Below, one piece after another: positions 56 through 33,839 of a stretch of DNA of 64,000 nt. How positions within the stretch are numbered: position 1 is the first letter of the stretch; each line of letters begins with the position of its first letter. The position numbers and the translations under genes are program-made. The notes under the pieces were generated by a model that saw only the letters and a program-made list of their open reading frames with translations, searched no databases and was not told the DNA's origin. The stretch comes from Blastocladiella emersonii ATCC 22665 (lineage: Eukaryota > Fungi > Blastocladiomycota), in contig JANHCV010000006.1 of the NCBI GenBank assembly GCA_025594325.1, positions 1 through 64,000 of the forward strand, given 5' to 3'.

Positions 56-56
<1 letters not shown>

Positions 57-4446: not shown

Positions 4447-7420
4447 ATGGACTCCCGACCCCTCCGCCGCGCGCTACCGCGGCTCGCTGTCGGCGCTCTG
4501 CTCGCGCTCATGTGCTCGTCCGCAGTAGCCTCGCCCGCGGGTGCCCGCCCGCCACCTGCCGGCAACGCCATCGCGTGGGGCGCCGCGCCGCACGAGGTCC
4601 GCGAGGACGCCCGCGACAGCATCCTGACGCACGACCAGCTCGCGCACGCGCTGTCAACGTCATCGCAGCCCGTGTACGAGGCCCTGCCCGCGACCGCCTT
4701 CAACGTCAACTTCACCGCCATCCTCTCCAACGTCAAGCTCCCGAACATCAGCAACATCAACTTACCGCCGCTCTCGACCGACGCGCTCGCCGAGGCCTTC
4801 GACGTCAACAAGACCAAGAACCTCGGCGGCCTCGAGGTGTGGTCGGGCCTCGGTCAGTCCTGGCGCGCCGGCGTCCGCGGGCAGCAGCCGCTGTCCCAGG
4901 CCGCGGTCAAGGACGGCTCGATCGACCCGGCCAACCCCGAGCTGCAGAAGATCATCCTGGTACGCCGCCGCTACTCTCACGAGGAATGTGACGATCGCGA
5001 TTCTGACTTTGTTCGACTGACAACTTGTGTAGCCGGTCCTCATCTTCGCGGGGATCTGCATCGTGGCGGGCATCCTGACCCTGCTCTCCTCGCCCATCAC
5101 GGCGTGCTGCGCCGTGTACCGCAAGCCGTCGGGCCTCGCGCAGCGCCGCCTGGCCGACGGTTCCAACAAGAAGGGATTCCTCCGCCTCAAGATCGCCTTC
5201 ATTGTCCTCGCGTTCCTCCAGCTGTACGCGCTCTGCCTGCCCGGTCTCGACCCCTCGATCCATCCCCTTGCTAACTTGCTCCATCACACGGCTAGGATCT
5301 TCGTCATCTGCATGACGCAGGGCAACGCGGCGCTCTCGCGCGGAATCTCCACGTCGGTCGGCGCCGTCCAGAACACGGCCGAGGCCGCCTACGCCATCAC
5401 CTACAACCTGCAGCCCGTCGCCAACGGCATCATCTCGGGGACCTCGGCGGTCATCAACTCGACCATCGACGATATCACGGCGCCCACCACGGTGCCCGCG
5501 TTCGAGGCCAGCATCAAGACGGCCGGCGACGCGCTGTCGTCGATCCTGCGCGCGGCGGCGGGCCAGGTGACGGGCGCCAAGTCGGACCTCGATGCGCTCG
5601 ACGCGTCGCTCTCGACCACCACCGGCAACGTCAACACGGTCAAGTCGGACCTCAACAACGCCCTCTCGGGCGCCAACAACCTCAACGCGCAGCTCACGGT
5701 GCCCAACACCAACGAGGGGTACCGCCTGACCAACCAGATCTCGGGCATCCCGACGGCCTCGAGCTTCGGCATCCCGGACCTCAGCTCGCCGCCCAGCACG
5801 TCCCAGGCGCGCAACCAGGTCAACGGGCTGCCGGACCTCGCCGCGCAGGCCAACAACGTCGACGCGCAGGTCGCCTCGGCGGGGGCCACGGTCCGCACCA
5901 AGCTCGCCGAGGCCAACACGGCCGTCAAGGGCAACGTGCAGCCGCTCATCAACCAGGCGACGACGCTCATCAACGGGCTCGCCGACGTGAAAAAGTCGGG
6001 CTCGGTCGCCTTCGCGCTCAACTCGGCGCTCGACACGGTGCAGGCGCAGGTAACGGCGCAGTCGCAGCCCGTCAAGGGCTACCTGACCATCGCCTACTAT
6101 GTCGTGCTCGCCATTGCCATCGTCCTGATCCTCGGCTTCCTCGCCGTCGGCCTGTCGCTGCCCACCACGAGCCCCAAGCCGCCGCGCCACTGCGCGTGCC
6201 TGACGCTCCTGCTCGCCGGCCTCCTGTTCCTGCTCGCCGGCGTCTTGTTCATCGGCTCGGTCGGCGTCGGCGAGGCGTGCACGCAGCTCGACCCCGTCAA
6301 CCCGGCACCCTCGGCCGGCGCCTTCTTTCCGCCGTCGACCAACGTCACGGCCATTGCCAAGATGGGGCTCGGCACGCTCAACACGTGCGCGTCGTCGTCC
6401 AACGTGTCGGTGCTCATGGCGCTCGAGCTCAACGGCGCACCTGCGGTCCTCGGCCTCGGCGCCGGCGTGTCGCTCAACCTGACCAAGCTGACCGACTCGC
6501 AGCTGGCGTCGCTCGACCTCGCCAAGCAGGTCAACGACCAGCTCAACTCGCTCAACGTCGCGTCGCTCGTGTCGTGGAACGGCGGCAGCGTGTCGGACCA
6601 GCTCGCGCCGCTGACGGGGACGGCCGGCCCGCTCGCCTCGTTCAACTTTGGCTTCTTCTCGACGCTGCCCACGGCCATCTCGACGTCGAGCCTCGTCTCC
6701 CTGCGCGACAACCTGTCCTCCCTCAAAGGCTCGGTCGACACCAACTCGTTCACGTACGACACCACGGTGGTCACGGCGCAGCAAAAGACCAACTGCGTCA
6801 ACGACTTCAAGTCGCGGCTCGACACGCAGATCTCGGCGCTCAACAACATCATCAACACGTCGGCGCCCAACGCGGCCGCGGCGCTCGCCGACACCAAGAC
6901 CAAGGGCGGCAACCTCGAGACGCGCGTCACCCAGCTCAAGACGTCGGCCAACACGATCGTGACGCGGTTCAACGCGCTCGTCGGCGTCGCGACCGACTAC
7001 CTGGCGGCGACGCGCACGGACCTGACGACGGTGCGGATCCCGAAGGCGACCAAGTCGCTGATCGAGACGGCGGGCACCGTGGACGCGACCATCGCGGCGC
7101 GGCTCAGCTGCCAGCCGCTCGCGCGGTCGCTGCTGGCCACGACCAACGGCGTGTGCGTCGTGACGCAGAGCGGGCTCGACGCGCTGTGGCTCGCGTGCTT
7201 CTGGGCCGCCGTCGTCGCCGAGATCACGGTCGGCATCTTCGTCAAGCTGCACGCGTACCTCCGCGCCGCCCGCGACGCCCCCGCAGCGCCCGGCACCGTG
7301 CCCGCGGGCAAGGCGCCCATCTCGGGCAAGGACGCGCTCAAGGTCAACCCGGCCTCGGACGCCTTCTCCAAGGCCAACATCATCCAGTCCAACCCCATGT
7401 CGCCCGGCGCCAAGGTCTAG
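4447..7420 (+). CDS. Prominin-like 5-TM membrane glycoprotein, intact source copy (introns ~4960-5030 and 5224-5295)
   Basis: Signal peptide, TM1 followed by CC, TM2, a large luminal loop, TM3-TM4 with a Cys cluster (RHCAC), a second large loop, then CQPLARSL...VC...GLDALW...IFVKLHAYLR. That last segment resembles the prominin C-terminal motif CKPV...LC..DPLNLFW...FAVKLAKYYR. Confidence 0.75.
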
Positions 7421-10400
7421 GCAGGTCGCGATACCAGTAACTTTGTCATTTATATGCTGTTGTTCCGTTGTTTCAATCGTATTCTTTCTACACGCAGTGG
7501 AGATCTACCACGAGCTTGGCTGCTGGGCGCGTCGCGGCTCTCGTGGACCGTGGTCGAGGCCAGCGCTTGCGTGGCATGGCAGGCTCGTCAGTCAAAGCAC
7601 TTGTCATGAGAAAACAAAGATCAATTTGACTGCTTGGATTGCACTGTACAACGATGGATGTAATGAGCAACTGCCGCTACTGTACAACTACGCGGCGGGC
7701 GTCGCCTCGGCCGCCGCCATCCCGTCCTGCTTCTCCGCGGCCGCCGCCCGCTGCCGCGCCTCGTCCATGACATCGTCGAGGATGATGTCGTACCACTCCG
7801 AGTACACGTGGCGGTTGTGCGCCGCGAGCCGGACCGCGTCCTGCACGAGCGAGGCCACCTGGTCCTGCACCGCCTCGAGGCCCTTGACGGCAGCCACGGC
7901 GGGCGGAGAGTCGGACGAGGTCGACGTCGTGGGCGCGAGACCAGTGCGCAGCGCGGCCTCGATCCGGCGCACCAGCAGCTTGTACACGGGGTCCGTCTTG
8001 GCGAGACACCGCGCGATGGTGCGGTGCATCTCGGCGCCGCACAGCCGCGCGAGGTCGGCGACGAGCGCGTCGACGGCCGTCGCCGAGTCGAGTACCGCGG
8101 TCAGCTGCGCCACGGCGTCGGGGACCCGGCCGGCACGCACCAGAGCGACCACAGGCGCGGGACGGACCGCCGTACCGACGCCGCTGGCCGAGTCGCTCGA
8201 CCCGCTACGTGACCGCGCGTGCGTGATGAGCGCTGCGAAGAGCAGGGCGCGGTGCGCGCGCTCGCTGAGCCGGTCGAGCCGGTCGCCGTCGAACGGGAAC
8301 GTCTCGGGCAGGCCCGCGGGTGCCGCACGGCGCGGGAACACCACCAGGCCGACGAACGCCGCGTCCCACAGCGTGCGGTACAGCGTGCCCGATCGCGCTG
8401 ACGGTGTTGTGGTGGTGGCGATGCCCGACGACTCGACAGCGTGAGCGAGCCAGGCGCGGGTGCGCGGCAACTCGGCCGTGGGCGAACCATCGGCGGCGTC
8501 GAGGAACGCGCGGAAGTGCGCGCGCTCGAGAGGGACGATGGTGCGCCGCAGCACCGGCTTGACGCTGTGCATGCGGACACGCGCGAGGTCCTGCCGCATC
8601 GCTTCGCTGATGTCGAGCAGCGCGAAGAGCAGGGTCGCGACCGACGCAGCAGAGTCGTTGTTCGGGTGAGAAGTGGTGGTGGTCGGAGGCGAGAGTGGCG
8701 GCGCGAGGTCGGCGAGGGCAGCGTCGCGGACAGGCGCGCAGAGCTCGCGCATCAGCCGGCGCAGCCCGTCGAGCACGCCGAGCTGCTCGGCCACGTCCAG
8801 AGCGCCGCGCTCGAGTCGCTCGCGGAGCCACGCCGTGTCGCACACGGCGGCCACGCGGGGGCGCGTCGACTCGGGGTCGGGCGTCGCCATGCAAATGTTG
8901 TCGCACAGCACGCCCAGACAGTCGGGGAACCACGGCCGCAGCTGGCCCTGCGCGGCGAGCGCCGTCGTCTGGTCGCGGAACGCGCGCTTGAGCGTCGCCT
9001 GCACCCGCGCCACGTGCGGGTCAGCCGGCGGCGACAGCGTGCCCTCGAGGAACAGCTCGTGCGCGAGGCGGACGTCGTTGAGGTCGCTCGCTGGTGGTTG
9101 GTTCGACGGTGCCGTGGTGGTGGGCGAGACGGGCGGGCTGCCGGCTGGGGAAGGCAACGGTGACGACAGCGGCGTCGTGAATCCCGCCGCGACCGAGTCG
9201 GACCGGCGACCCGACGCATGGCCGGTAGAGGAGAGCGAGGGTCCCAGAAGCTCGTCTGCTGGGTCGCGCATCAGGTCGAAATGGTCAAACTCGAGGTCGC
9301 GGCGGAACCGCGCGAGGGCGACCTCAGCCTCGGCCCCGCCAAACCGCCGCAGCCGGTTGAAGATGAGCTGCTGCCGCGTGCGCAGGCCCTCGAGGTACTC
9401 GGCCGCCGCCGTCGCCACCTCGGCCGTCGCCGACTCGGTTGAGCCGACAGCGGCAGAGAGGAAGCGCGGATGCGCCGTGGCCCACATGCGGTCGACCTCG
9501 ACGAAATGCGCAATCAGCTCCTGGATCAGCGTCTGCTGGCTGGCGAGCTTCCACTCGGCAAACTGGCGCGCATACTGGGACCACGCCGCGGCGAAGTGGT
9601 GCACGCGGCGCTTGGTCGGCGACCCGAGCAGCCGCGCAAACGAGTCCATCATCAGCGTCGTCTTCTCGAACAAGTTCTTGAGAGTGGAGCGGGAGGGTTA
9701 GCGTGCAAGGGTGAGGCTGTGCGAGTGTGCGAACGTACGTCGTCGAGCGGGTTGCCCGGCCGAAGCACCTGCGACGGGGACAGCGACGTGGCGAGGGCCG
9801 CAAGGAACATGCGCGTGTCGAACGGGTTGCTGGCGTCGGTCTCGGGCACTGGGTCCTCGACGTCGACGCCCTCGTCGCTCGCCTCGGCCGAACGGTCGCT
9901 CTGGATCGAGGTGCGGCTCGCCGTGCGGGCGTGAGACATGGGCTGCCGCTCCAGCGTCGGCGTCGCCTTGGACGAAGAGGATGCAGAAGCGAAAGCGGCA
10001 ATCTCGTTGAGCAGAACGCGCGTGACGCGCAGCGTGGTCTCGTCTTCGACGTGCGCGACCAGGTCATCGAGCGTGCGGCTGCTGGCGTCGTGCCGTACGA
10101 GGTCGAGCGCGACGAAATCGGCAATGGCGGTCTCGAGGTCCGACGACGAGGTGGCGGAGCGCTGAGAGCTGAGCGAGTCGCTGGACAGGTTGCGTGGGAG
10201 CGATACGCTGGTGGTGGTAGCGCCCTCGTCCGAGGAAGCCGCGTCGCCTGAGGACGACCGAGTGGAGGCGGTCGAGTCGGTCGACGCCGCCGACGCGGTG
10301 CGCTGCCGGGGCGTGAAGCTGGTCGTACTCCCACTGCCGCCAAATGTCAGCCGGCGCGCGAGCGCTGACCGGCGGCGCGACTCGCACGCCTCGAGCTTGG

Positions 10401-13400
10401 CGCGCAGCTTCGCCGCGGTCCGCTCGCGCGCCTCGCGCTCCAGGTCGGCCTTGCGCTGCGCCGTGGTCTGCACGTGCGCGAGGTGCGACCGCGCGGACGA
10501 GACGGCGCGCTCGAGGACCGACCGCCGCGCCGATGCCGCGCGCTGCATGCGGACGGCGAGCGAGGGCCGCTTCTTGAGACCGGTACCAGTGCTCTCGCCG
10601 CCCTCGGCGGGCGCGACGGCGGCGGTGCCAGTCGGGCTCGCGGGCACGTCGGTGCACCGTGCGCGGAACCGGCCGAGCATCCCGAGCGGTTGCTGTTTGT
10701 GCGGTGGGGTCTCGGGCGAGTCGATGGAGGGGAACGCCTCGCTGCTGCCGGGACTGTTGAGGCGGCGCCTGGTTGAGGGCGATACGACTGGGATGGAGAA
10801 GGCCACGTCCATGGTTGATGGTCAGTTCATCGCTTTGGAGAGCGCGGGCTTCTCTAGTGACGAACCCTCGTAGAACACACGATGGCGTGCTGGCTACCTG
10901 GCCCCGTGCTGTGGCTCAGCAGCGGTGGTCACGGTGCGAGGCGCAGACGGTGATGAAGGCGGTCGGGCGCGAGTGCGTGATCCGCCGAGATGATGAGCGG
11001 CGCGGGCTGGTTGGTCGATGGACACACCCGTGGCGCACTTTCCTCTCGTGTTTCGACAAAGACGACGACGTGTACGGCGAGGATATCACGTCGTGCTTGC
11101 CGCAAGTGATGCGGTGGGTACAGGTGTCTCGCGAGGTCGGCGGGCGAGTTGGTGAGGGCAGCGCTCACAGAAGTCGATGATGATGATGCATGGGTTGCCG
11201 ACGGGCGGCAGAGTCCATTGAAGGCGAAGGTGAAGGTCGTTGCATTTGGAAGGAAGAGGAGATCATGGAGCAGCAGCGGGCAACGGTGAAGCGACCGACC
11301 GCCGCGAAGTGCGCACTCAACCTTATCACCGCCGGCAGTGCGCCACGGGCACCTGCAGGTGCGCCATGACCTGCTCGGCCGTCGCCAGCAGCGCGTCGTA
11401 CGCCGCCTGCAGCTGGGCGCGGCCCGCCGCCGCCACGGCCGCCACCTCGTCGTGCCCCGGCGCCGCGGCCGCGACGATGCGCTGCGTCAGGTGCTGCTTG
11501 GTCGCCAGCAGCACGTCCTGCACCTCGCCGCGCAGCTCCGGGAACGCGCGGATCAGCTGCACGATGGCGCGCATCGTCACGTCAAAGTAGGTGACCGTGG
11601 CCGCGACGGCCCCGGGTTGGTCGTTGGCGTCGCCCAGGCGTGCGCCAAACGACTCGCGCTTGCCGAGGCTCGACAGCACGAGCTGCTGCAGCGACGGGAG
11701 GATGTCGGACCGCGCGATCGCCAGCCTACACTCGGTTTCGAGGGTGAGTCGAGGTCCGTGCAGGGAGGTGAGACAGCAGGAGCGAGGCACGCACGTCTTG
11801 GGCAGCGGGTACTGGTAAAAGAGGCTCGTCAGGACGTAGCTCACGAAATGCACGTCGCGCGTGAGCACCTTGCGGAACCCGTCGAGGAACACGTCTACTC
11901 GGTGCGGGCAACCGTCAGTGAGGCAACAACCTCAGGCCAAGTGAATCAGACCACGTACGGAACGCGGGCAGCTGCACCACGGCCTCGACCGCGTCCGGGT
12001 GGAAGCCGTGCACGACAAACGCGGGCACCAGCGCCGGCTCGCGGATGAAGAGCCGGTTGACGTACTCGCCGATCAGCTCCTTGGTCTCTACATGCCGCCG
12101 TCATTCACGTGTGAGTGAGGGTGCCACGCCAGAGTAACCACGAGAACACGGACCAGGCACCATGGCCTCGACCAGCACCCGCAGCACCTTGCACTTGGTC
12201 GACCGCACGCGGTCCGCGATCGCCACCTCGTGCATGGCCGAGTCCGCCTTGGCGTGGTTGCGCAGCGTGATCTGCTGCATGTGCGGCGCGCTCGCCGCCA
12301 GCAGGAAGTCGAGCACCTGCAGCGTGACCGCCGTCGTCGCGCGCGTCGCCAGCCCGCACCCGCCCACCAGCAGCGTCTCGGGCGACGCCAGCAGCGCGCC
12401 GTACTGCACGTGCGGGTCGCCCGCCAGCGTGCGCGCCGTGAACACGGTCACCTCCATTGGGTACAGCGCGAACCGCCGCGTCCACGCGTCGACGCTGCCC
12501 GCCATCACGAGCCCCGCGATCTCGCCCATGGTCGGGATCGTGCTGCTGTTTTCAGTGGTCTCGAGCTCGGCGGTAGTCCGAGACACGGTGGTGGTGGTCG
12601 ATGGCCACGCCGGGTCCTTGGGGCGGACCGACTGCATGTGCTGCGAGTACTCGGGCGGCAGCGTGCCGAGGAGCGCAAAGTACAGCGCCGGCGACGCGGC
12701 CACGGCGGGGACGCGCACGAGCTGCGCGAGCGGCATCCGGTGCAGCAGCTGGAGCGAGAGCGGCGGCAGCGTCGGGTGCTGGTGGCACCCGCGCCGCCGC
12801 GTGTAGCTCAGCACGTAGTACGCCAGCACCGCCGTGCGCGGGCCGGGCGGGATCACCCCGCTGGTGACCTGCGTGACGTGCGCCCAGATGGCCTGCTCGT
12901 CGAGCGGCGAGTAGCACGGCGCCGGGTCCGCGTGCAGCCTACTCGTTACAGCGGGTTAGTACTGGCTTAGCTCAGTAGCGACGATACAACGCGTACCCCT
13001 CGATAAACTGGTCGACGAGCTCGATCAGCGCGCGGTCGACCCGCTCGCACTGCAGAATGTGCGCGAGCAGCCACGGGCCCAGGTCGAGCCCGGCGCGCTG
13101 GAACTCGCCCCCGCCTTGCATCAGCTGCAGCACCAGCATCGCCGAGCCCTCGGCGTGCAGCAGCGCCGCGCGTGCCAGCGTTGACGTCGGCAGGACCGCG
13201 CGGACGTGCTCGACGCACGCCGACCCGTTGGGCAGCAGGTACCCGCTCGCTCCGCCGGGACCGCTGCCGCCGACGGGCGCGCCGAGCCAGTCGAACACGA
13301 GCCGCTCGACCATGCCCCAGCTGTTGTCGAGGACGTGGTACACGAGCACCGCGAGCGACGGGTTGCTGGCGACCCACGCGGCGAGGACCGGCGCCGTGAA

Positions 13401-14896
13401 GTCGGCGGGGAACCGCGCCATGACCGCCATGGTCACGCAGGCCGCAATCTCGCGCATCCGTTCCGACGGTGAGGTGGTGTGGGTGCCGTGCGACAGTGTG
13501 GCCAGGAGCGGCGGCGCCACGGGTTTCGGCGCGCCGCCGTCTTTGCCGGGAGCGGCAGCGGGGAGCGGGGCCATGGCGGCAGCCACGGCCGGGTTGAGGG
13601 TCGGGTCGGCCAGCCCGACGCTGTCGAGCGACGGGACCAGCACGCCCAGATTGAAGGCGGTCGGCGTGCTCGCCACGAGCAGCGCAATCAGGCGCAGCAC
13701 CTGCAGCTGGACGACGGGCGGCGCGTGGGGCTCGCGCAGCCGCACGGCGAGGTGCACGATCACGTCGGCGACGAGTGTGTCCGACTCTTCAAACTCGCGC
13801 ACAATGGCGCGCGCGTTGGCGTTGAGCAGCGCCGACAGCAGCGGCACCACGTCGTCGTCCTGCTGCGACCCGGCCACGCCGTGGCGCAGGGCGAGCCGCA
13901 GCGACAGCGCCGGCAGCACCGAGGCGCGGCGCAGGTGGTGCAGGAACAGCGCGGCGCCCTCGTCCGACAGCGACGCGAGGTGCTCGGCGCAGGCCGTCAC
14001 GACGCCGCGCATCGCCGCGCGGTCACCGCGGTACGCGTCCATGAGCCAGTCCATGTGCTCGGCGAACCGCGCCGGGTGCGCGCACACGAGGAATCCAAAG
14101 AGTGGGGGACCGGGCGGCGCGTGCAGCAGCAGCTCGGTCGCGGGCACAAGCTCGTAGAGCGCGTAGGTCATGGTAATGGCGGCGCACACGACGGCCGGCG
14201 AGTCGGGCAGCGCGCTCGCCGTGGCGGCCGTGTGCGGGATGTGACCTGACGCAATGTTGCCCGCAAATCTATTTACGGGGGATCAGTGGATGTCGTGAGG
14301 TAGGGAGCGGAGAGAGGGCGTACTCGAGCACCTCCTCGGCGCCAGGTTCGGCGCACAGCGGATCGCCCAGCGGCGTCTCCTCGTCGCCGAACCCCGTCGA
14401 CCACAGGAACGTGTACAGGTCGACGATGCGGGCCTAAATGCGGTCCTGCGCGCGGGCGTCAGCTTTCGAGAGCGTCGGAGCTGGTGATCGGGAGAACGGA
14501 CCAGGTCGCGGTGCTGCTTCGCGACGGGCAGGACAGCGGCGGGCGCGGGCCCGTTGTTTCTAACCAGGATGTGGACGAGCAGCTCGGGCGACGGGTTCTG
14601 GGCGTGGGACGACACGTGTGAGCTCCTGACGTTCGCGTCGACGGCCCACCAAGTAGCATACGGCGCTCCACGTCTCAACGAGCTGGTCGAGACTCTCTGC
14701 ATCAAGCGCAACGCGAAGGAGATCCATGATTCATTGGCTTTCATGAGGCGAGGGGGGAAGAGAGAGAGGACGCGCCCCGATGACCACTCGCGTCCTGACC
14801 GACTTGACCGGCCTCAGCGTTCTCGCTCTCTCAACGTTGACCCGGCACCCTACAATGTAACGCTTCCATGGACTCCTTACTTGATGGACTGAGATG
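4790..14896. repeat. Left (source) arm of the ~10.1-kb inverted repeat
   Basis: Every ORF in this interval has a mirror ORF whose coordinates sum to 38614 (e.g. 5063+33551, 7688+30926, 12972+25642, 14554+24060). The end points were read base by base. Confidence 0.97.
7688..10812 (-). CDS. T-complex protein 11 (TCP11/SOK1) family protein, 2 exons (intron 9677-9738)
   Basis: N-terminal basic coiled coil, then NPFDTRMFLAA...RFAAAWSQYARQFAEWK...LIQELIAHF and later TCP11-like helices (LERAHF, LPETFPFDGDRL, HNRHVYSEWY). Confidence 0.85.
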
Positions 14897-14916
14897 GCGT
14901 CGAAGATCCGCGCCAT
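11326..14916 (-). CDS. INTS2: Integrator complex subunit 2, intact source copy, multi-exon
   Basis: Several blocks match remembered INTS2: GFLVCAHPARF (LCLLVANVPDSF), LPALSLRL (LPGLGVAL), AVLAYYVLSY (ILVLYYILSY), LFYQYPLPKT (LCIQYALPKS), LIRAFPEL (FCRAFPPL). The putative exon 1 is ATG GCG CGG ATC TTC GAC GCC ATC TCA GTC CAT CAA|GTAAGG. The 5' exon structure is less certain. Confidence 0.85.
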
Positions 14917-15008
14917 GCACCTCGTCGGACAACCGCTTTGCTGACTTCGGTCCCGCACGTCGCCTACGTCGCTCTCGGCTTCTAGCCCTCGCCCGCACCA
15001 CGACGACC
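14917..15008. promoter_or_regulatory. 92-bp putative bidirectional promoter between INTS2 and the MED1-like gene
   Basis: Divergent ATGs at 14916 (-) and 15009 (+). This depends on the inferred INTS2 start. Confidence 0.55.
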
Positions 15009-16975: not shown

Positions 16976-17153
16976 CGGTCGCGGCTCCCTTACAGTTGCC
17001 GAGCAAGCGCCGTGTCCATGCGGTCAATCAAAAACGAGGTGGATTATCATCGCATGACGGGGAGACTCGGTGAGGGGAGGAGGGTGCGGAGAAGTGTACA
17101 GGGTGGGAAGGTTGCGAGGAGCGGGCGAGCGAGCGCAAGGAAGCAACGGCGTC

Positions 17154-18368: not shown

Positions 18369-18552
18369 GGTAGTGGAGATGAGGATGGCGTTGGGTTGCG
18401 GGGAGTAGCGCAAGACGAGCGAGCTTGAGCACGGCCATCGTCGTCGCGTGCGGGGGAGAAGGGAGCGACGTGGCGGCGGCGGAGGCGCAGGGACGCCTGC
18501 AGGACGCCACGTGTGCGGCGTAGCGCGTCCAGGTCCACGTTGCCGGCGGCGG

Positions 18553-21428: not shown

Positions 21429-21789
21429 GTCGGACGGGGAGCTTGCTTGGGAGGTATTTCCAAGAGAAGCGAGTTTTTATGTATTCACCAGAACTTCTGG
21501 AAGTCGGAGCCGGGTGCGTGTGTGTGTTGGTTGGTGGTGCCGGGTCAAGAGGGGGGAGAGATCAGGCAGCGGGGAGGATAGCGATGGGCGGCAGGGATCG
21601 AGGTTGCGTGAGGGCAAGCGGGGAGCAGCAGATCGCAGAGGGGAGAGGTCAGGGACGAGGTGGGGAGGCGAGAGCGGAGGTCGAGGGATGGGTTGGGAGC
21701 GTGGGGGAGGAGGGCGGAGAGGTTCAACCAAGCGACGGAAGGTGTGCGGCGGACTGGTAGCCAGAGCATGTCCGGGGGCGGGGGGACCG

Positions 21790-21802
21790 CCGCTCTTTAT
21801 AC
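21790..21802 (-). promoter_or_regulatory. TATA box in an extended motif GTATAAAGAGCGG
   Basis: An identical 13-mer occurs upstream of the subtilisin gene (36405-36417). CCAAT boxes lie nearby at ~21943 and ~22024. Confidence 0.5.
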
Positions 21803-23270: not shown

Positions 23271-23336
23271 GCGTCCCCGCGGGTGAAAACAACTATGAGA
23301 TGCGCGTCCCCGTGGGTGAAATCGACAATGAGATGC
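23271..23336 (+). repeat. Two tandem 33-bp imperfect direct repeats
   Basis: gcgtccccgcgggtgaaaacaactatgagatgc and gcgtccccgtgggtgaaatcgacaatgagatgc are 29/33 identical. Confidence 0.85.
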
Positions 23337-23399
23337 GAGCGAGTGCGGCGGTAGCGGACACGCCGCAGACGGATGAGCGACACGATGCTCGAAGATCCT

Positions 23400-23717
23400 G
23401 AGGGTCAAAGTTGAGAACTGTCTTTGAAGACCGACAACGGCGCAACGGAGGCGTACCTCGCCTCGGGTCCAAACCTGATCAACAACGCGCCGTCGTAGCT
23501 CTCACAGAAGGACTCGCGTGGAGCCCAACTGATGCCGCTCGGGCCACGGGACGCAGAATAAGAGAGCTGTGATACTAACTCCGTGTCGGTGAGCGTCAGG
23601 ACTTGGTGCCGTAGCAGAACGCATGCGACGACAGCGCGCTCACGCCGACAACAGGCCGAGAGGCGACGTCAAGAACACCGTCAACTGTCTCGTCTTGTGG
23701 AAGAAGCTCTTGATGGT
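23400..23717 (-). pseudogene. 3' remnant of the gene interrupted by the duplicated arm
   Basis: The minus strand starts ACC ATC AAG AGC TTC TTC CAC AAG ACG (TIKSFFHKT, strong GC3 bias), followed by a GTGAGC...CCTGAC...TAG/CAG intron-like sequence. The lower boundary is approximate. Confidence 0.5.
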
Positions 23718-26700
23718 CATCTCAGTCCATCAAGTAAGGAGTCCATGGAAGCGTTACATTGTAGGGTGCCGGGTCAACGTTGAGAGAGCGAGAACGCTGA
23801 GGCCGGTCAAGTCGGTCAGGACGCGAGTGGTCATCGGGGCGCGTCCTCTCTCTCTTCCCCCCTCGCCTCATGAAAGCCAATGAATCATGGATCTCCTTCG
23901 CGTTGCGCTTGATGCAGAGAGTCTCGACCAGCTCGTTGAGACGTGGAGCGCCGTATGCTACTTGGTGGGCCGTCGACGCGAACGTCAGGAGCTCACACGT
24001 GTCGTCCCACGCCCAGAACCCGTCGCCCGAGCTGCTCGTCCACATCCTGGTTAGAAACAACGGGCCCGCGCCCGCCGCTGTCCTGCCCGTCGCGAAGCAG
24101 CACCGCGACCTGGTCCGTTCTCCCGATCACCAGCTCCGACGCTCTCGAAAGCTGACGCCCGCGCGCAGGACCGCATTTAGGCCCGCATCGTCGACCTGTA
24201 CACGTTCCTGTGGTCGACGGGGTTCGGCGACGAGGAGACGCCGCTGGGCGATCCGCTGTGCGCCGAACCTGGCGCCGAGGAGGTGCTCGAGTACGCCCTC
24301 TCTCCGCTCCCTACCTCACGACATCCACTGATCCCCCGTAAATAGATTTGCGGGCAACATTGCGTCAGGTCACATCCCGCACACGGCCGCCACGGCGAGC
24401 GCGCTGCCCGACTCGCCGGCCGTCGTGTGCGCCGCCATTACCATGACCTACGCGCTCTACGAGCTTGTGCCCGCGACCGAGCTGCTGCTGCACGCGCCGC
24501 CCGGTCCCCCACTCTTTGGATTCCTCGTGTGCGCGCACCCGGCGCGGTTCGCCGAGCACATGGACTGGCTCATGGACGCGTACCGCGGTGACCGCGCGGC
24601 GATGCGCGGCGTCGTGACGGCCTGCGCCGAGCACCTCGCGTCGCTGTCGGACGAGGGCGCCGCGCTGTTCCTGCACCACCTGCGCCGCGCCTCGGTGCTG
24701 CCGGCGCTGTCGCTGCGGCTCGCCCTGCGCCACGGCGTGGCCGGGTCGCAGCAGGACGACGACGTGGTGCCGCTGCTGTCGGCGCTGCTCAACGCCAACG
24801 CGCGCGCCATTGTGCGCGAGTTTGAAGAGTCGGACACACTCGTCGCCGACGTGATCGTGCACCTCGCCGTGCGGCTGCGCGAGCCCCACGCGCCGCCCGT
24901 CGTCCAGCTGCAGGTGCTGCGCCTGATTGCGCTGCTCGTGGCGAGCACGCCGACCGCCTTCAATCTGGGCGTGCTGGTCCCGTCGCTCGACAGCGTCGGG
25001 CTGGCCGACCCGACCCTCAACCCGGCCGTGGCTGCCGCCATGGCCCCGCTCCCCGCTGCCGCTCCCGGCAAAGACGGCGGCGCGCCGAAACCCGTGGCGC
25101 CGCCGCTCCTGGCCACACTGTCGCACGGCACCCACACCACCTCACCGTCGGAACGGATGCGCGAGATTGCGGCCTGCGTGACCATGGCGGTCATGGCGCG
25201 GTTCCCCGCCGACTTCACGGCGCCGGTCCTCGCCGCGTGGGTCGCCAGCAACCCGTCGCTCGCGGTGCTCGTGTACCACGTCCTCGACAACAGCTGGGGC
25301 ATGGTCGAGCGGCTCGTGTTCGACTGGCTCGGCGCGCCCGTCGGCGGCAGCGGTCCCGGCGGAGCGAGCGGGTACCTGCTGCCCAACGGGTCGGCGTGCG
25401 TCGAGCACGTCCGCGCGGTCCTGCCGACGTCAACGCTGGCACGCGCGGCGCTGCTGCACGCCGAGGGCTCGGCGATGCTGGTGCTGCAGCTGATGCAAGG
25501 CGGGGGCGAGTTCCAGCGCGCCGGGCTCGACCTGGGCCCGTGGCTGCTCGCGCACATTCTGCAGTGCGAGCGGGTCGACCGCGCGCTGATCGAGCTCGTC
25601 GACCAGTTTATCGAGGGGTACGCGTTGTATCGTCGCTACTGAGCTAAGCCAGTACTAACCCGCTGTAACGAGTAGGCTGCACGTGGACCCGGCGCCGTGC
25701 TACTCGCCGCTCGACGAGCAGGCCATCTGGGCGCACGTCACGCAGGTCACCAGCGGGGTGATCCCGCCCGGCCCGCGCACGGCGGTGCTGGCGTACTACG
25801 TGCTGAGCTACACGCGGCGGCGCGGGTGCCACCAGCACCCGACGCTGCCGCCGCTCTCGCTCCAGCTGCTGCACCGGATGCCGCTCGCGCAGCTCGTGCG
25901 CGTCCCCGCCGTGGCCGCGTCGCCGGCGCTGTACTTTGCGCTCCTCGGCACGCTGCCGCCCGAGTACTCGCAGCACATGCAGTCGGTCCGCCCCAAGGAC
26001 CCGGCGTGGCCATCGACCACCACCACCGTGTCTCGGACTACCGCCGAGCTCGAGACCACTGAAAACAGCAGCACGATCCCGACCATGGGCGAGATCGCGG
26101 GGCTCGTGATGGCGGGCAGCGTCGACGCGTGGACGCGGCGGTTCGCGCTGTACCCAATGGAGGTGACCGTGTTCACGGCGCGCACGCTGGCGGGCGACCC
26201 GCACGTGCAGTACGGCGCGCTGCTGGCGTCGCCCGAGACGCTGCTGGTGGGCGGGTGCGGGCTGGCGACGCGCGCGACGACGGCGGTCACGCTGCAGGTG
26301 CTCGACTTCCTGCTGGCGGCGAGCGCGCCGCACATGCAGCAGATCACGCTGCGCAACCACGCCAAGGCGGACTCGGCCATGCACGAGGTGGCGATCGCGG
26401 ACCGCGTGCGGTCGACCAAGTGCAAGGTGCTGCGGGTGCTGGTCGAGGCCATGGTGCCTGGTCCGTGTTCTCGTGGTTACTCTGGCGTGGCACCCTCACT
26501 CACACGTGAATGACGGCGGCATGTAGAGACCAAGGAGCTGATCGGCGAGTACGTCAACCGGCTCTTCATCCGCGAGCCGGCGCTGGTGCCCGCGTTTGTC
26601 GTGCACGGCTTCCACCCGGACGCGGTCGAGGCCGTGGTGCAGCTGCCCGCGTTCCGTACGTGGTCTGATTCACTTGGCCTGAGGTTGTTGCCTCACTGAC

Positions 26701-27288
26701 GGTTGCCCGCACCGAGTAGACGTGTTCCTCGACGGGTTCCGCAAGGTGCTCACGCGCGACGTGCATTTCGTGAGCTACGTCCTGACGAGCCTCTTTTACC
26801 AGTACCCGCTGCCCAAGACGTGCGTGCCTCGCTCCTGCTGTCTCACCTCCCTGCACGGACCTCGACTCACCCTCGAAACCGAGTGTAGGCTGGCGATCGC
26901 GCGGTCCGACATCCTCCCGTCGCTGCAGCAGCTCGTGCTGTCGAGCCTCGGCAAGCGCGAGTCGTTTGGCGCACGCCTGGGCGACGCCAACGACCAACCC
27001 GGGGCCGTCGCGGCCACGGTCACCTACTTTGACGTGACGATGCGCGCCATCGTGCAGCTGATCCGCGCGTTCCCGGAGCTGCGCGGCGAGGTGCAGGACG
27101 TGCTGCTGGCGACCAAGCAGCACCTGACGCAGCGCATCGTCGCGGCCGCGGCGCCGGGGCACGACGAGGTGGCGGCCGTGGCGGCGGCGGGCCGCGCCCA
27201 GCTGCAGGCGGCGTACGACGCGCTGCTGGCGACGGCCGAGCAGGTCATGGCGCACCTGCAGGTGCCCGTGGCGCACTGCCGGCGGTGA
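23713..27288 (+). CDS. INTS2: Duplicated INTS2 copy with exon 1 truncated and a junction-derived in-frame ATG (MVISVHQ instead of MARIFDAISVHQ); function uncertain
   Basis: Mirror of 11326-14896. The junction reads ttgATG GTC ATC TCA GTC CAT CAA gtaagg. One Ala>Val change at 25684 (GCG>GTG). Confidence 0.6.
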
Positions 27289-27801
27289 TAAGGTTGAGTG
27301 CGCACTTCGCGGCGGTCGGTCGCTTCACCGTTGCCCGCTGCTGCTCCATGATCTCCTCTTCCTTCCAAATGCAACGACCTTCACCTTCGCCTTCAATGGA
27401 CTCTGCCGCCCGTCGGCAACCCATGCATCATCATCATCGACTTCTGTGAGCGCTGCCCTCACCAACTCGCCCGCCGACCTCGCGAGACACCTGTACCCAC
27501 CGCATCACTTGCGGCAAGCACGACGTGATATCCTCGCCGTACACGTCGTCGTCTTTGTCGAAACACGAGAGGAAAGTGCGCCACGGGTGTGTCCATCGAC
27601 CAACCAGCCCGCGCCGCTCATCATCTCGGCGGATCACGCACTCGCGCCCGACCGCCTTCATCACCGTCTGCGCCTCGCACCGTGACCACCGCTGCTGAGC
27701 CACAGCACGGGGCCAGGTAGCCAGCACGCCATCGTGTGTTCTACGAGGGTTCGTCACTAGAGAAGCCCGCGCTCTCCAAAGCGATGAACTGACCATCAAC
27801 C

Positions 27802-30800
27802 ATGGACGTGGCCTTCTCCATCCCAGTCGTATCGCCCTCAACCAGGCGCCGCCTCAACAGTCCCGGCAGCAGCGAGGCGTTCCCCTCCATCGACTCGCCC
27901 GAGACCCCACCGCACAAACAGCAACCGCTCGGGATGCTCGGCCGGTTCCGCGCACGGTGCACCGACGTGCCCGCGAGCCCGACTGGCACCGCCGCCGTCG
28001 CGCCCGCCGAGGGCGGCGAGAGCACTGGTACCGGTCTCAAGAAGCGGCCCTCGCTCGCCGTCCGCATGCAGCGCGCGGCATCGGCGCGGCGGTCGGTCCT
28101 CGAGCGCGCCGTCTCGTCCGCGCGGTCGCACCTCGCGCACGTGCAGACCACGGCGCAGCGCAAGGCCGACCTGGAGCGCGAGGCGCGCGAGCGGACCGCG
28201 GCGAAGCTGCGCGCCAAGCTCGAGGCGTGCGAGTCGCGCCGCCGGTCAGCGCTCGCGCGCCGGCTGACATTTGGCGGCAGTGGGAGTACGACCAGCTTCA
28301 CGCCCCGGCAGCGCACCGCGTCGGCGGCGTCGACCGACTCGACCGCCTCCACTCGGTCGTCCTCAGGCGACGCGGCTTCCTCGGACGAGGGCGCTACCAC
28401 CACCAGCGTATCGCTCCCACGCAACCTGTCCAGCGACTCGCTCAGCTCTCAGCGCTCCGCCACCTCGTCGTCGGACCTCGAGACCGCCATTGCCGATTTC
28501 GTCGCGCTCGACCTCGTACGGCACGACGCCAGCAGCCGCACGCTCGATGACCTGGTCGCGCACGTCGAAGACGAGACCACGCTGCGCGTCACGCGCGTTC
28601 TGCTCAACGAGATTGCCGCTTTCGCTTCTGCATCCTCTTCGTCCAAGGCGACGCCGACGCTGGAGCGGCAGCCCATGTCTCACGCCCGCACGGCGAGCCG
28701 CACCTCGATCCAGAGCGACCGTTCGGCCGAGGCGAGCGACGAGGGCGTCGACGTCGAGGACCCAGTGCCCGAGACCGACGCCAGCAACCCGTTCGACACG
28801 CGCATGTTCCTTGCGGCCCTCGCCACGTCGCTGTCCCCGTCGCAGGTGCTTCGGCCGGGCAACCCGCTCGACGACGTACGTTCGCACACTCGCACAGCCT
28901 CACCCTTGCACGCTAACCCTCCCGCTCCACTCTCAAGAACTTGTTCGAGAAGACGACGCTGATGATGGACTCGTTTGCGCGGCTGCTCGGGTCGCCGACC
29001 AAGCGCCGCGTGCACCACTTCGCCGCGGCGTGGTCCCAGTATGCGCGCCAGTTTGCCGAGTGGAAGCTCGCCAGCCAGCAGACGCTGATCCAGGAGCTGA
29101 TTGCGCATTTCGTCGAGGTCGACCGCATGTGGGCCACGGCGCATCCGCGCTTCCTCTCTGCCGCTGTCGGCTCAACCGAGTCGGCGACGGCCGAGGTGGC
29201 GACGGCGGCGGCCGAGTACCTCGAGGGCCTGCGCACGCGGCAGCAGCTCATCTTCAACCGGCTGCGGCGGTTTGGCGGGGCCGAGGCTGAGGTCGCCCTC
29301 GCGCGGTTCCGCCGCGACCTCGAGTTTGACCATTTCGACCTGATGCGCGACCCAGCAGACGAGCTTCTGGGACCCTCGCTCTCCTCTACCGGCCATGCGT
29401 CGGGTCGCCGGTCCGACTCGGTCGCGGCGGGATTCACGACGCCGCTGTCGTCACCGTTGCCTTCCCCAGCCGGCAGCCCGCCCGTCTCGCCCACCACCAC
29501 GGCACCGTCGAACCAACCACCAGCGAGCGACCTCAACGACGTCCGCCTCGCGCACGAGCTGTTCCTCGAGGGCACGCTGTCGCCGCCGGCTGACCCGCAC
29601 GTGGCGCGGGTGCAGGCGACGCTCAAGCGCGCGTTCCGCGACCAGACGACGGCGCTCGCCGCGCAGGGCCAGCTGCGGCCGTGGTTCCCCGACTGTCTGG
29701 GCGTGCTGTGCGACAACATTTGCATGGCGACGCCCGACCCCGAGTCGACGCGCCCCCGCGTGGCCGCCGTGTGCGACACGGCGTGGCTCCGCGAGCGACT
29801 CGAGCGCGGCGCTCTGGACGTGGCCGAGCAGCTCGGCGTGCTCGACGGGCTGCGCCGGCTGATGCGCGAGCTCTGCGCGCCTGTCCGCGACGCTGCCCTC
29901 GCCGACCTCGCGCCGCCACTCTCGCCTCCGACCACCACCACTTCTCACCCGAACAACGACTCTGCTGCGTCGGTCGCGACCCTGCTCTTCGCGCTGCTCG
30001 ACATCAGCGAAGCGATGCGGCAGGACCTCGCGCGTGTCCGCATGCACAGCGTCAAGCCGGTGCTGCGGCGCACCATCGTCCCTCTCGAGCGCGCGCACTT
30101 CCGCGCGTTCCTCGACGCCGCCGATGGTTCGCCCACGGCCGAGTTGCCGCGCACCCGCGCCTGGCTCGCTCACGCTGTCGAGTCGTCGGGCATCGCCACC
30201 ACCACAACACCGTCAGCGCGATCGGGCACGCTGTACCGCACGCTGTGGGACGCGGCGTTCGTCGGCCTGGTGGTGTTCCCGCGCCGTGCGGCACCCGCGG
30301 GCCTGCCCGAGACGTTCCCGTTCGACGGCGACCGGCTCGACCGGCTCAGCGAGCGCGCGCACCGCGCCCTGCTCTTCGCAGCGCTCATCACGCACGCGCG
30401 GTCACGTAGCGGGTCGAGCGACTCGGCCAGCGGCGTCGGTACGGCGGTCCGTCCCGCGCCTGTGGTCGCTCTGGTGCGTGCCGGCCGGGTCCCCGACGCC
30501 GTGGCGCAGCTGACCGCGGTACTCGACTCGGCGACGGCCGTCGACGCGCTCGTCGCCGACCTCGCGCGGCTGTGCGGCGCCGAGATGCACCGCACCATCG
30601 CGCGGTGTCTCGCCAAGACGGACCCCGTGTACAAGCTGCTGGTGCGCCGGATCGAGGCCGCGCTGCGCACTGGTCTCGCGCCCACGACGTCGACCTCGTC
30701 CGACTCTCCGCCCGCCGTGGCTGCCGTCAAGGGCCTCGAGGCGGTGCAGGACCAGGTGGCCTCGCTCGTGCAGGACGCGGTCCGGCTCGCGGCGCACAAC

Positions 30801-30926
30801 CGCCACGTGTACTCGGAGTGGTACGACATCATCCTCGACGATGTCATGGACGAGGCGCGGCAGCGGGCGGCGGCCGCGGAGAAGCAGGACGGGATGGCGG
30901 CGGCCGAGGCGACGCCCGCCGCGTAG
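27802..30926 (+). CDS. Complete duplicated TCP11-family gene (intron 28876-28937)
   Basis: The translations are identical to the left copy in the ORF track, and the upstream intergenic region is also duplicated. Confidence 0.85.
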
Positions 30927-31193
30927 TTGTACAGTAGCGGCAGTTGCTCATTACATCCATCGTTGTACAGTGCAATCCAAGCAGTCAAATTGATCTTTGT
31001 TTTCTCATGACAAGTGCTTTGACTGACGAGCCTGCCATGCCACGCAAGCGCTGGCCTCGACCACGGTCCACGAGAGCCGCGACGCGCCCAGCAGCCAAGC
31101 TCGTGGTAGATCTCCACTGCGTGTAGAAAGAATACGATTGAAACAACGGAACAACAGCATATAAATGACAAAGTTACTGGTATCGCGACCTGC

Positions 31194-33839
31194 CTAGACC
31201 TTGGCGCCGGGCGACATGGGGTTGGACTGGATGATGTTGGCCTTGGAGAAGGCGTCCGAGGCCGGGTTGACCTTGAGCGCGTCCTTGCCCGAGATGGGCG
31301 CCTTGCCCGCGGGCACGGTGCCGGGCGCTGCGGGGGCGTCGCGGGCGGCGCGGAGGTACGCGTGCAGCTTGACGAAGATGCCGACCGTGATCTCGGCGAC
31401 GACGGCGGCCCAGAAGCACGCGAGCCACAGCGCGTCGAGCCCGCTCTGCGTCACGACGCACACGCCGTTGGTCGTGGCCAGCAGCGACCGCGCGAGCGGC
31501 TGGCAGCTGAGCCGCGCCGCGATGGTCGCGTCCACGGTGCCCGCCGTCTCGATCAGCGACTTGGTCGCCTTCGGGATCCGCACCGTCGTCAGGTCCGTGC
31601 GCGTCGCCGCCAGGTAGTCGGTCGCGACGCCGACGAGCGCGTTGAACCGCGTCACGATCGTGTTGGCCGACGTCTTGAGCTGGGTGACGCGCGTCTCGAG
31701 GTTGCCGCCCTTGGTCTTGGTGTCGGCGAGCGCCGCGGCCGCGTTGGGCGCCGACGTGTTGATGATGTTGTTGAGCGCCGAGATCTGCGTGTCGAGCCGC
31801 GACTTGAAGTCGTTGACGCAGTTGGTCTTTTGCTGCGCCGTGACCACCGTGGTGTCGTACGTGAACGAGTTGGTGTCGACCGAGCCTTTGAGGGAGGACA
31901 GGTTGTCGCGCAGGGAGACGAGGCTCGACGTCGAGATGGCCGTGGGCAGCGTCGAGAAGAAGCCAAAGTTGAACGAGGCGAGCGGGCCGGCCGTCCCCGT
32001 CAGCGGCGCGAGCTGGTCCGACACGCTGCCGCCGTTCCACGACACGAGCGACGCGACGTTGAGCGAGTTGAGCTGGTCGTTGACCTGCTTGGCGAGGTCG
32101 AGCGACGCCAGCTGCGAGTCGGTCAGCTTGGTCAGGTTGAGCGACACGCCGGCGCCGAGGCCGAGGACCGCAGGTGCGCCGTTGAGCTCGAGCGCCATGA
32201 GCACCGACACGTTGGACGACGACGCGCACGTGTTGAGCGTGCCGAGCCCCATCTTGGCAATGGCCGTGACGTTGGTCGACGGCGGAAAGAAGGCGCCGGC
32301 CGAGGGTGCCGGGTTGACGGGGTCGAGCTGCGTGCACGCCTCGCCGACGCCGACCGAGCCGATGAACAAGACGCCGGCGAGCAGGAACAGGAGGCCGGCG
32401 AGCAGGAGCGTCAGGCACGCGCAGTGGCGCGGCGGCTTGGGGCTCGTGGTGGGCAGCGACAGGCCGACGGCGAGGAAGCCGAGGATCAGGACGATGGCAA
32501 TGGCGAGCACGACATAGTAGGCGATGGTCAGGTAGCCCTTGACGGGCTGCGACTGCGCCGTTACCTGCGCCTGCACCGTGTCGAGCGCCGAGTTGAGCGC
32601 GAAGGCGACCGAGCCCGACTTTTTCACGTCGGCGAGCCCGTTGATGAGCGTCGTCGCCTGGTTGATGAGCGGCTGCACGTTGCCCTTGACGGCCGTGTTG
32701 GCCTCGGCGAGCTTGGTGCGGACCGTGGCCCCCGCCGAGGCGACCTGCGCGTCGACGTTGTTGGCCTGCGCGGCGAGGTCCGGCAGCCCGTTGACCTGGT
32801 TGCGCGCCTGGGACGTGCTGGGCGGCGAGCTGAGGTCCGGGATGCCGAAGCTCGAGGCCGTCGGGATGCCCGAGATCTGGTTGGTCAGGCGGTACCCCTC
32901 GTTGGTGTTGGGCACCGTGAGCTGCGCGTTGAGGTTGTTGGCGCCCGAGAGGGCGTTGTTGAGGTCCGACTTGACCGTGTTGACGTTGCCGGTGGTGGTC
33001 GAGAGCGACGCGTCGAGCGCATCGAGGTCCGACTTGGCGCCCGTCACCTGGCCCGCCGCCGCGCGCAGGATCGACGACAGCGCGTCGCCGGCCGTCTTGA
33101 TGCTGGCCTCGAACGCGGGCACCGTGGTGGGCGCCGTGATATCGTCGATGGTCGAGTTGATGACCGCCGAGGTCCCCGAGATGATGCCGTTGGCGACGGG
33201 CTGCAGGTTGTAGGTGATGGCGTAGGCGGCCTCGGCCGTGTTCTGGACGGCGCCGACCGACGTGGAGATTCCGCGCGAGAGCGCCGCGTTGCCCTGCGTC
33301 ATGCAGATGACGAAGATCCTAGCCGTGTGATGGAGCAAGTTAGCAAGGGGATGGATCGAGGGGTCGAGACCGGGCAGGCAGAGCGCGTACAGCTGGAGGA
33401 ACGCGAGGACAATGAAGGCGATCTTGAGGCGGAGGAATCCCTTCTTGTTGGAACCGTCGGCCAGGCGGCGCTGCGCGAGGCCCGACGGCTTGCGGTACAC
33501 GGCGCAGCACGCCGTGATGGGCGAGGAGAGCAGGGTCAGGATGCCCGCCACGATGCAGATCCCCGCGAAGATGAGGACCGGCTACACAAGTTGTCAGTCG
33601 AACAAAGTCAGAATCGCGATCGTCACATTCCTCGTGAGAGTAGCGGCGGCGTACCAGGATGATCTTCTGCAGCTCGGGGTTGGCCGGGTCGATCGAGCCG
33701 TCCTTGACCGCGGCCTGGGACAGCGGCTGCTGCCCGCGGACGCCGGCGCGCCAGGACTGACCGAGGCCCGACCACACCACGAGGCCGCCGAGGTTCTTGG
33801 TCTTGTTGACGTTGGTCTTGTTGACGTCAAAGGCCTCGG
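31194..33839 (-). pseudogene. 5'-truncated duplicate of the prominin-like gene (lacks start codon, signal peptide and first ~115 codons)
   Basis: Homology begins at EAFDVNKT(NVNKT)KNLGGLVVW. I found no in-frame ATG close upstream across the junction. Confidence 0.7.

Follow-up and report, generated by a model that had tools for sequence, protein, structure and literature searches.

A 10.1-kb inverted segmental duplication in Blastocladiella emersonii and its likely origin in a single copying accident

Introduction

How does a fungal chromosome come to carry the same block of host genes twice, in opposite orientations and only 8.8 kb apart? The question is raised by bases 1-64000 of contig JANHCV010000006.1 of Blastocladiella emersonii ATCC 22665 (the whole 64,000-nt stretch analysed here, referred to as the window). 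It resolves into several parts, namely whether both copies exist in the DNA, which of them is the original, how the second was made and how long ago.

Results and discussion

Two inverted arms around a unique spacer

BLAST self-comparison, a base-by-base check and a repeat search agreed that 4790-14896 and 23718-33839 are reverse complements of each other. The core of the repeat pairs 4802-14896 with 33812-23718 over 10,095 nt, at a coordinate sum of 38614 and with two mismatches (4835/33779 and 12930/25684). It extends to 4790/33839 if a 15-nt tandem duplication found only in the right arm is allowed, and this extra segment holds one further substitution (C at 4800 against T at 33829). The complete count of differences is three substitutions and one 15-nt insertion, or 99.97% identity over 10,107 columns. 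The arm coordinates and coordinate sum given in the original prediction were thus recovered by the self-comparison and the base-by-base check, and its by-eye tally of differences proved to be the full count from the alignment. An exact inverted match of 10 kb is far beyond chance.

4790-14896, plus strand: left arm, ancestral donor copy, 10,107 nt
14897-23717, no strand: unique spacer, 8,821 nt, with five annotated genes followed by 2.3 kb without a gene call
15009-16975 (plus), 17154-17562 (minus), 17958-18368 (minus), 18553-19698 (minus) and 20268-21428 (minus): annotated genes of the spacer
23718-33839, minus strand: right arm, derived inverted copy, 10,122 nt, sitting between 23717 and 33840
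12930 (partner 25684), minus strand: INTS2-like substitution, codon GCG (Ala) in the left arm, GTG (Val) in the right

Identity between the arms ends sharply at all four edges. Neither sensitive blastn nor Smith-Waterman alignment with shuffles revealed diverged homology outside the arms, as a two-tier palindrome would possess, and no inverted homology was detected inside the spacer. The substitution at 12930/25684, 9 nt past a predicted 3' splice site, is the sole arm difference far from a junction, and over the final 1,966 nt up to the inner edge the arms do not differ.

Genes in and around the arms

The arms carry host genes, whose GenBank models are as follows.

4447-7420, plus strand: prominin-like gene H9P43_005326, 942 aa
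7688-10812, minus strand: TCP11-domain gene, 1020 aa, fully within the arm, flanked there by 513 nt upstream and 267 nt downstream
11326-14727, minus strand: INTS2-like gene, 985 aa as annotated, weak Pfam match, 169 nt of upstream sequence inside the arm
23912-27288, plus strand: right copy of the INTS2-like gene, annotated, 966 aa
27802-30926, plus strand: right copy of the TCP11-domain gene, protein identical to the left copy
31194-34365, minus strand: chimeric gene H9P43_005336, 901 aa, a prediction only, in which the truncated prominin-like copy continues into the flank beyond the right arm (flank B)

The annotated TCP11-domain gene has a 5' exon in addition to the open reading frame read here from the sequence. 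TCP11 had been put forward as the only gene copied whole, a view that does not hold by the GenBank calls, which place the INTS2-like coding region fully inside the arm as well; by that annotation, TCP11 is not clearly the sole gene to have been copied entire. The duplication has left TCP11 present twice in identical form, another INTS2-like coding region whose upstream region is shortened, and a 5'-truncated prominin-like copy that gene predictors have joined to flank DNA. Users of the annotation should be aware that TCP11 and the INTS2-like gene are duplicated, and that the 901-aa 'prominin' model fuses a truncated copy with flank DNA.

Both arms are present in the DNA

Several features of the assembly invite suspicion that a chimeric or fold-back long read, or an assembler misjoin, invented the second arm: the arm length of 10.1 kb is close to the mean HiFi read length of 10.5 kb, the structure starts 4.8 kb from the contig start, and the assembly was purged and manually refined. 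The HiFi reads are those of SRR19593111 (PMC9730499). The right outer junction at 33839/33840 is crossed unbroken by contigs of two libraries (X1 record 5, covering 33783-34993, and X2 record 13, covering 33783-35305), with zero differences and no competing branch. We take X1 for the 2022 HiFi run and X2 for the Illumina run, and we assume separate DNA preparations; all runs belong to one BioSample. This read-based junction support concerns the join of right arm and flank B, the inner junctions (left arm/spacer and spacer/right arm) being known from the HiFi assembly alone. A contig for the left-arm junction is present in a third set, X3.

The depth of the contigs gives the same answer. In X1, depth is 351-407 on the three-copy part of the arm and 308 on the two-copy part, with 127-137 on the flank; in X2, the arm is at 69-71 and the flank at 28-34. 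The arm-to-flank ratio is ~2.3-3.1, and at least 2.3 even where a third copy is absent. That arm depth rises above twice that of the flank is due to a third copy of the prominin-like gene, which lies in a separate 2.9-kb segment on contig 18 (L003) and is 98% identical. A third copy of the whole arm was considered as the source of the ~3-fold HiFi depth and rejected, since the 2.9-kb segment on contig 18 explains it. Variant contigs in X3 and X4, whose variants match residues of P0005, are likewise explained by the contig-18 copy.

Both arm copies hence exist in the DNA and not in the assembly alone. Per-arm depth had been proposed as a check on the original prediction, and the arms are found above flank depth rather than at half of it; together with the junction contigs from two libraries, this raised depth bears out the genuine inverted segmental duplication that it had claimed. 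An artefact is already largely refuted and retains a very small probability, given that HiFi and Illumina contigs alike (by the library assignment above) offer no other path at the right outer junction, that depth is at least 2.3 times that of the flank where the third copy is absent, and that the right arm holds private variants. The locus thus combines the near-identical inverted arms, the unique spacer and the two physical copies by which a palindromic (inverted) segmental duplication is recognised.

The left arm is the donor

The arm edge at 4790 interrupts the first exon of the prominin-like gene, 343 nt past its start codon, and the outer end of the left arm runs on into the intact gene through this exon 1. 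Both P0004, a paralogue, and the contig-18 copy align across 4790 into the left flank. Furthermore, a high-GC3 coding signal continues unbroken from ~4500 to 4900, through the outer edge of the left arm. Rooted with the contig-18 copy, the three differences at the outer end, which lie no more than 46 nt from the right-arm junction, are each derived in the right arm; polarity is readable for these three of the four arm differences, that at 12930/25684 having no outgroup.

As two paralogues align across the outer edge and the right-arm differences are in the derived state, these comparisons identify the left arm as the donor. The left arm had earlier been named as donor on the ground that both its ends continue into intact genes. 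The choice of donor stands, on the paralogues and the outgroup, and so does the continuation at the outer end; the inner end is placed by the GenBank gene calls in an intergenic stretch of 281 nt.

Insertion site and junctions

The right arm sits as a clean insertion in DNA that is unannotated and looks non-coding.

21429-23717 (left half) and 33840-34545 (right half), no strand: insertion target, with flat GC by codon position
23709-23734, no strand: inner junction 23717/23718, with an 8-nt inverted repeat astride the join, CTTGATGG ... CCATCAAG
33779-33839, minus strand: outer-junction scar of the right arm, two substitutions and a 15-nt tandem duplication

The only gene call in the target is the chimeric prominin-like model (31194-34365), whose 5' end reaches into it; the target lies downstream of a subtilase gene and forms the upstream sequence of none. 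Flank B is normal chromosome, with subtilase, tyrosinase and isocitrate lyase genes, and tRNA and Rfam scans yielded no feature. An older gene at the target was also considered: a stop-free stretch of 224 codons runs over the rejoined site, yet 86% of random joins of window sequence reach at least 225. Flat GC by codon position and the lack of a Pfam hit further speak against such a gene.

In the scar at the outer junction, the substitution at 33779 replaces Glu by Val in the reading frame of the prominin-like gene; the 15-nt tandem duplication (33797-33827; TRF, period 15) is in frame and adds five residues, and the substitution at 33829 is synonymous. Three of the four arm differences thereby fall within 46 nt of one end (P ~4e-7 per end).

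Microhomology visible at the right-arm junctions amounts to 0 nt, although a consumed match or lost target bases would not show, and these junctions have no target-site duplication. As a yardstick for the inner junction, random joins of window sequence had an inverted repeat of at least 8 nt within 20 nt of the join in 0.7% of trials. In the ancestral arrangement the 8-nt match at the inner junction is direct, not inverted. The repeat was examined as a possible primer, and fold-back, strand invasion and snap-back synthesis schemes all fail to give the observed join.

Origin of the second arm

The most probable explanation, which we favor with good though not complete confidence, is a single "copy, invert, paste" accident of repair or replication in the B. 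emersonii lineage. A 10.1-kb block comprising most of the prominin-like gene, the whole TCP11-domain gene and the INTS2-like gene would have been copied and placed, inverted, 8.8 kb downstream of the original. The copying may have been error-prone repair synthesis, by a template switch or by break-induced copying from a nearby template; alternatively, a fragment derived from the sister may have been captured by end-joining. The 15-nt templated duplication and the two substitutions beside it presumably arose while the outer end was processed. Counted against this explanation is that fold-back and template-switch models usually come with 2-8 bp of microhomology (PMC3907307), none of which is visible here.

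Capture of the genes by a transposon, such as a Helitron or a Pack-type element, is highly improbable. In neither orientation does the right arm have TC at its start or CTRR at its end, and the site is not between A and T, as a Helitron would require; terminal inverted repeats are absent, as is a target-site duplication. The arms hold no Rep/helicase or transposase among their Pfam hits or gene calls, in keeping with the absence of a transposase noted in the original prediction.

It could also be proposed that selection or a genetic program shaped the palindrome, which would then serve as an invertible (flip-flop) cassette or be an adaptive amplification of TCP11. Inverted repeats of 10 kb are indeed able to flip the DNA between them, and TCP11 is duplicated intact together with its flanks. 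This proposal is nevertheless very unlikely: a recombinase and promoter-switch logic are absent, inversion of the spacer would neither break nor join genes, and the breakpoints cut a gene and fall in non-coding DNA, as they would in an accident. TCP11 dosage, earlier named as the simplest candidate for any selected effect, finds no support as such.

Age of the duplication

The near-identity of the arms is no measure of the age of the copying accident if they undergo gene conversion, which yields the same near-identity. That the duplication is 'very recent', as had been suggested, is plausible. The alternative is an old inverted duplication whose arms have been kept identical by recurrent gene conversion, as in sex-chromosome palindromes, with the differences at the outer edge marking spots that conversion tracts rarely reached; such a concentration of differences at an edge is the pattern that conversion would leave. 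We consider this unlikely. Divergence is confined to the outer edge, whereas at the inner edge the arms match over all of the last 1,966 nt; the locus has no diverged outer tier; and the three polarisable differences are all derived in the non-functional copy, beside its junction. This alternative bears on the age of the duplication and not on its origin.

Significance of the locus

The event is of a familiar kind among DNA copying accidents and, taken alone, an ordinary structural variant. Large near-perfect palindromes of B. emersonii receive no mention in the genome paper, and we found no paper reporting them. At this locus one can read directly which arm is donor and which is copy, where the insertion took place and what scar the junction carries, and work on the origin of palindromes in an early-diverging, coenocytic fungus can start from there. 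In the resulting 29-kb palindrome-like structure, the arms could exchange sequence or flip the spacer.

A broader and decidedly tentative suggestion is that some process in B. emersonii is unusually active in copying gene blocks of ~3-30 kb and reinserting them nearby in inverted orientation. If so, the present locus would be the freshest and least-overwritten product of such a process. Palindromes would then originate in blunt insertions of the 'copy, invert, paste' type, scarred at their junctions, and would only later become conversion-maintained and sources of chimeric genes.

Comparison with known systems

Insertions made by template switching or microhomology-mediated break-induced replication (MMBIR) are expected to show junction-proximal mutations and junction microhomology. 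The B. emersonii locus resembles insertions of this type in that a nearby template is copied inverted, and in that the 15-nt templated duplication and the substitutions cluster at one junction; it differs in the absence of the expected microhomology. Origin-dependent inverted-repeat amplification, which gives an inverted triplication, was rejected, the locus holding two arm copies and the assembly one spacer copy. The third copy of the prominin-like gene lies apart, in a 2.9-kb segment of another contig.

Fold-back inverted duplications have a single-copy spacer of 766-70,466 bp (Hermetz et al. 2014, PMC3907307; Al-Zain et al. 2023, PMC10622511). Of their junctions, 13 of 21 possessed 2-8 bp of inverted microhomology, and the events are terminal or dicentric, with a secondary rearrangement being needed (PMC3907307, PMC10622511). 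The order of direct copy, single-copy spacer and inverted copy is shared by the present locus, and its 8.8-kb spacer lies inside the reported range. In contrast to fold-back events, the B. emersonii duplication is interstitial, the copy ending after 10.1 kb and rejoining the break site; its junction microhomology is 0 nt, and there is no terminal deletion, dicentric intermediate or distal secondary rearrangement.

The palindromes of mammalian sex chromosomes have arms that are >99.9% identical, with a unique spacer between them. The gene-bearing inverted arms (99.97% identical here) and the kilobase-scale unique spacer are common to both systems, as is the potential for arm-to-arm conversion and spacer inversion. 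The B. emersonii arms are far smaller and reside in a fungal host. Furthermore, while conversion at this locus is only a potential, the polarity of donor and copy and an insertion-type origin are visible in it.

Extent of the inverted duplication

Self-BLAST of the window returned a single non-trivial match, 4802-14896 against 33812-23718 (10,095 nt, two mismatches, no gaps), and a separate repeat search of the window recovered the identical arm pair. The two mismatches in this core were placed by a base-by-base check at 4835/33779 and 12930/25684. The right arm alone carries a 15-nt tandem duplication; once this is accommodated, the match reaches 4790/33839, the added stretch containing a third substitution at 4800/33829. 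In total, the arms differ by three substitutions and one 15-nt insertion (99.97% identity), and the original prediction, which had described the repeat and counted its differences in these terms, proved exact and complete. All four arm edges are sharp, identity stopping at once, and no homology past them was found by sensitive blastn or by Smith-Waterman comparison with shuffled controls. The genome paper mentions tandem duplications and no palindromes or inverted duplications (PMC9730499); among the matches listed in a full-text search, no paper ties Blastocladiella to either.

The window is bases 1-64000 of the 2.02-Mb contig 6, and just 4.8 kb separate the palindrome from this contig end, where base 1 is inside a CAG-rich poly-glutamine gene (11-1939); telomere repeat is absent from window 1-1939. 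At 62001-64000, GC falls to 58%.

Gene content of the arms

The GenBank gene calls in the two arms are as follows.

Gene calls in the arms
4447-7420, + strand, prominin-like, 942 aa
7688-10812, - strand, TCP11-domain, 1020 aa
11326-14727, - strand, INTS2-like, 985 aa
23912-27288, + strand, INTS2-like right copy, 966 aa
27802-30926, + strand, TCP11-domain right copy
31194-34365, - strand, chimeric prominin-like H9P43_005336, 901 aa

The TCP11 protein (1020 aa) is encoded twice, both times on JANHCV010000006.1; it is the same in both arms, and its gene retains 513 nt of upstream and 267 nt of downstream sequence. TCP11 had been proposed as the only gene copied whole: it was indeed copied whole, but "only" does not clearly hold, since by the GenBank calls the INTS2-like coding region also lies within the arm, with 169/281 nt to its divergent neighbour retained. 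INTS2 is a weak assignment, scoring 20.3 bits where the cut-off is 25. The INTS2-like starts are annotated differently (14727 versus 23887/23912), and the lengths of 985 and 966 aa are annotation noise, because the DNA at both starts is identical. Any effect of TCP11 dosage is speculation. The predicted H9P43_005336 model combines the truncated right-arm prominin-like copy with 526 nt of flank B, the sequence beyond the outer junction at 33839/33840. The spacer holds a small stand-alone peptidase-inhibitor I9 gene (17154-17562), and just past the right arm lies a subtilase that carries an I9 propeptide of its own (34546-36168).

A third prominin-like copy and the donor arm

A protein cluster look-up identified a third prominin-like protein, P0005, on JANHCV010000018.1. 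Its DNA (L003 10252-13155; about 81388-84291 of that contig) matches window 4603-7502 at 98.0%, intron kept, and 31112-33839 is therefore present three times in the genome. This contig-18 copy is a dispersed, DNA-level copy with sharp edges, missing the first 156 coding nt; its annotated product, H9P43_010151 (927 aa), has a differing N-terminus.

The arm edge at 4790 falls within exon 1 of the prominin-like gene (annotated 4447-7420). P0004, a 60%-identical prominin-like paralogue, can be aligned to the left-copy protein before and after this breakpoint, where the residues of the right-copy model are unrelated to it, and collinearity of the contig-18 copy with the left arm begins at 4603 and continues across 4790. 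Because both align across 4790, the left arm is ancestral, in keeping with its proposed role as donor. Polarised by outgroup comparison with the contig-18 copy, all three outer differences show the ancestral state in the left arm (TTC; 15-nt duplication absent; GAG); hence, the right arm gained a Glu-to-Val change, a five-residue in-frame duplication and a synonymous change. These right-arm-derived changes all lie within 46 nt of the outer junction, and three of four differences falling that near a given end has a P of about 4e-7 under random placement.

Read evidence for both copies

The assembly was built with LJA from PacBio HiFi reads (mean 10.5 kb), purged of duplicated contigs, and Pilon-polished with Illumina GAIIx reads (PMC9730499). 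Read contigs of four runs of one BioSample (X1-X4) were compared with 30900-36899, across the right outer junction. From date and depth, we infer that X1 is the 2022 HiFi run and X2 an Illumina run. A 1,211-nt contig of X1 spans 33783-34993 and a 1,523-nt contig of X2 spans 33783-35305, both with no differences, running unbroken from the arm through right-arm-private sequence into flank B. Since both cross the junction intact, neither library holds an empty-site path of any weight.

Depth, which with this junction had been proposed as a check on the duplication, is raised in the arms' shared sequence in X1 (word depth 351-407 in arm contigs, 127-137 in flank) and in X2 (69-71 versus 28-34), Illumina depth ratios being unreliable in this genome because of the strong GC bias of X2 at 36433-36899. 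In that stretch (73% GC), depth is ~5 in X2 and ~130-165 in X1. The near-threefold HiFi arm depth is due to the third prominin-like copy; at 30900-31099, DNA found only in the two arms, X1 depth is 308, ~2.3 times the flank. The inverted duplication is real. An assembly artefact is refuted for the part tested, outer-junction contigs and arm depth, both inner junctions coming from the assembly alone.

In the low-depth run X3 the left-arm form is present, with T at 33779 and without the 15 nt, and the loose end of this run is 4760-4789 reverse-complemented. At position 33779, the X1 contig has the left-arm letter and that of X2 the right-arm letter, which is what two coexisting alleles would be expected to give, each contig builder having resolved the bubble in one direction. 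Ten substitutions exclusive to X3 and X4 agree with P0005 residues, and those contigs therefore derive from the third copy. A loose end of X4 at 31279 reads TCGTATAACTTCGTATAA, resembling the loxP-type linker used in 454 paired-end libraries, in which case X3 and X4 would be older, low-depth 454 runs.

Insertion target, junctions and age

An older gene at the insertion target is not supported: 86% of random joins yield a longer open frame than that across the rejoined site, the target has no codon-position GC signal and no Pfam match, and GenBank calls no gene at 21429-23911 and, apart from the 5' end of the chimeric prediction (to 34365), none at 33840-34545. This gene-less target also contains a 33-nt tandem repeat (23270-23337, 2.1 copies, 88% matches), ~400 nt away from the insertion site.

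Neither junction has microhomology between target and donor continuation, and no target-site duplication or Helitron or terminal-inverted-repeat ends were found. Pfam and gene calls gave no transposase, bearing out the claim that the arms carry none, and scans gave no tRNA or Rfam element. Spanning the inner junction (23709-23734) is an 8-nt inverted repeat, CTTGATGG / CCATCAAG, as is seen in 0.7% of random joins; the 8-mer also occurs 9 nt from the donor inner end, the ancestral arrangement being a direct repeat 8.8 kb apart. As a primer, it fits none of the priming schemes worked through.

Outside the scar at the outer junction, the arms show a single difference across about 10,060 nt, against 2.0% for the contig-18 copy. 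If no gene conversion has acted, this would make the inverted copy about two hundred times younger than the contig-18 copy; arm-to-arm conversion, if acting, would erase this clock. The scar is confined to the outer edge, the inner edge being 1,966 identical bases, and this asymmetry mildly favours a young event.

Comparison with fold-back inverted duplications

In fold-back inverted duplications, spacers measure 0.77-70 kb, and inverted microhomology of 2-8 bp is usual (PMC3907307); the primer end can be hidden through flap trimming by polymerase delta (PMC10622511). Unlike these, the B. emersonii event is interstitial, its copy extends for 10.1 kb before rejoining the break site, and its junctions are without visible microhomology; for these reasons, a single "copy, invert, paste" repair or replication event is favoured. 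Such an event may have copied a template 8.8 kb away, through template switching or break-induced synthesis, with subsequent end joining, or it may have captured a sister-derived fragment, and with either the outer end would have undergone error-prone processing. The inverted duplication belongs to a known type of structure, sharing with fold-back inverted duplications the succession of a direct copy, a kb-scale single-copy spacer and an inverted copy.
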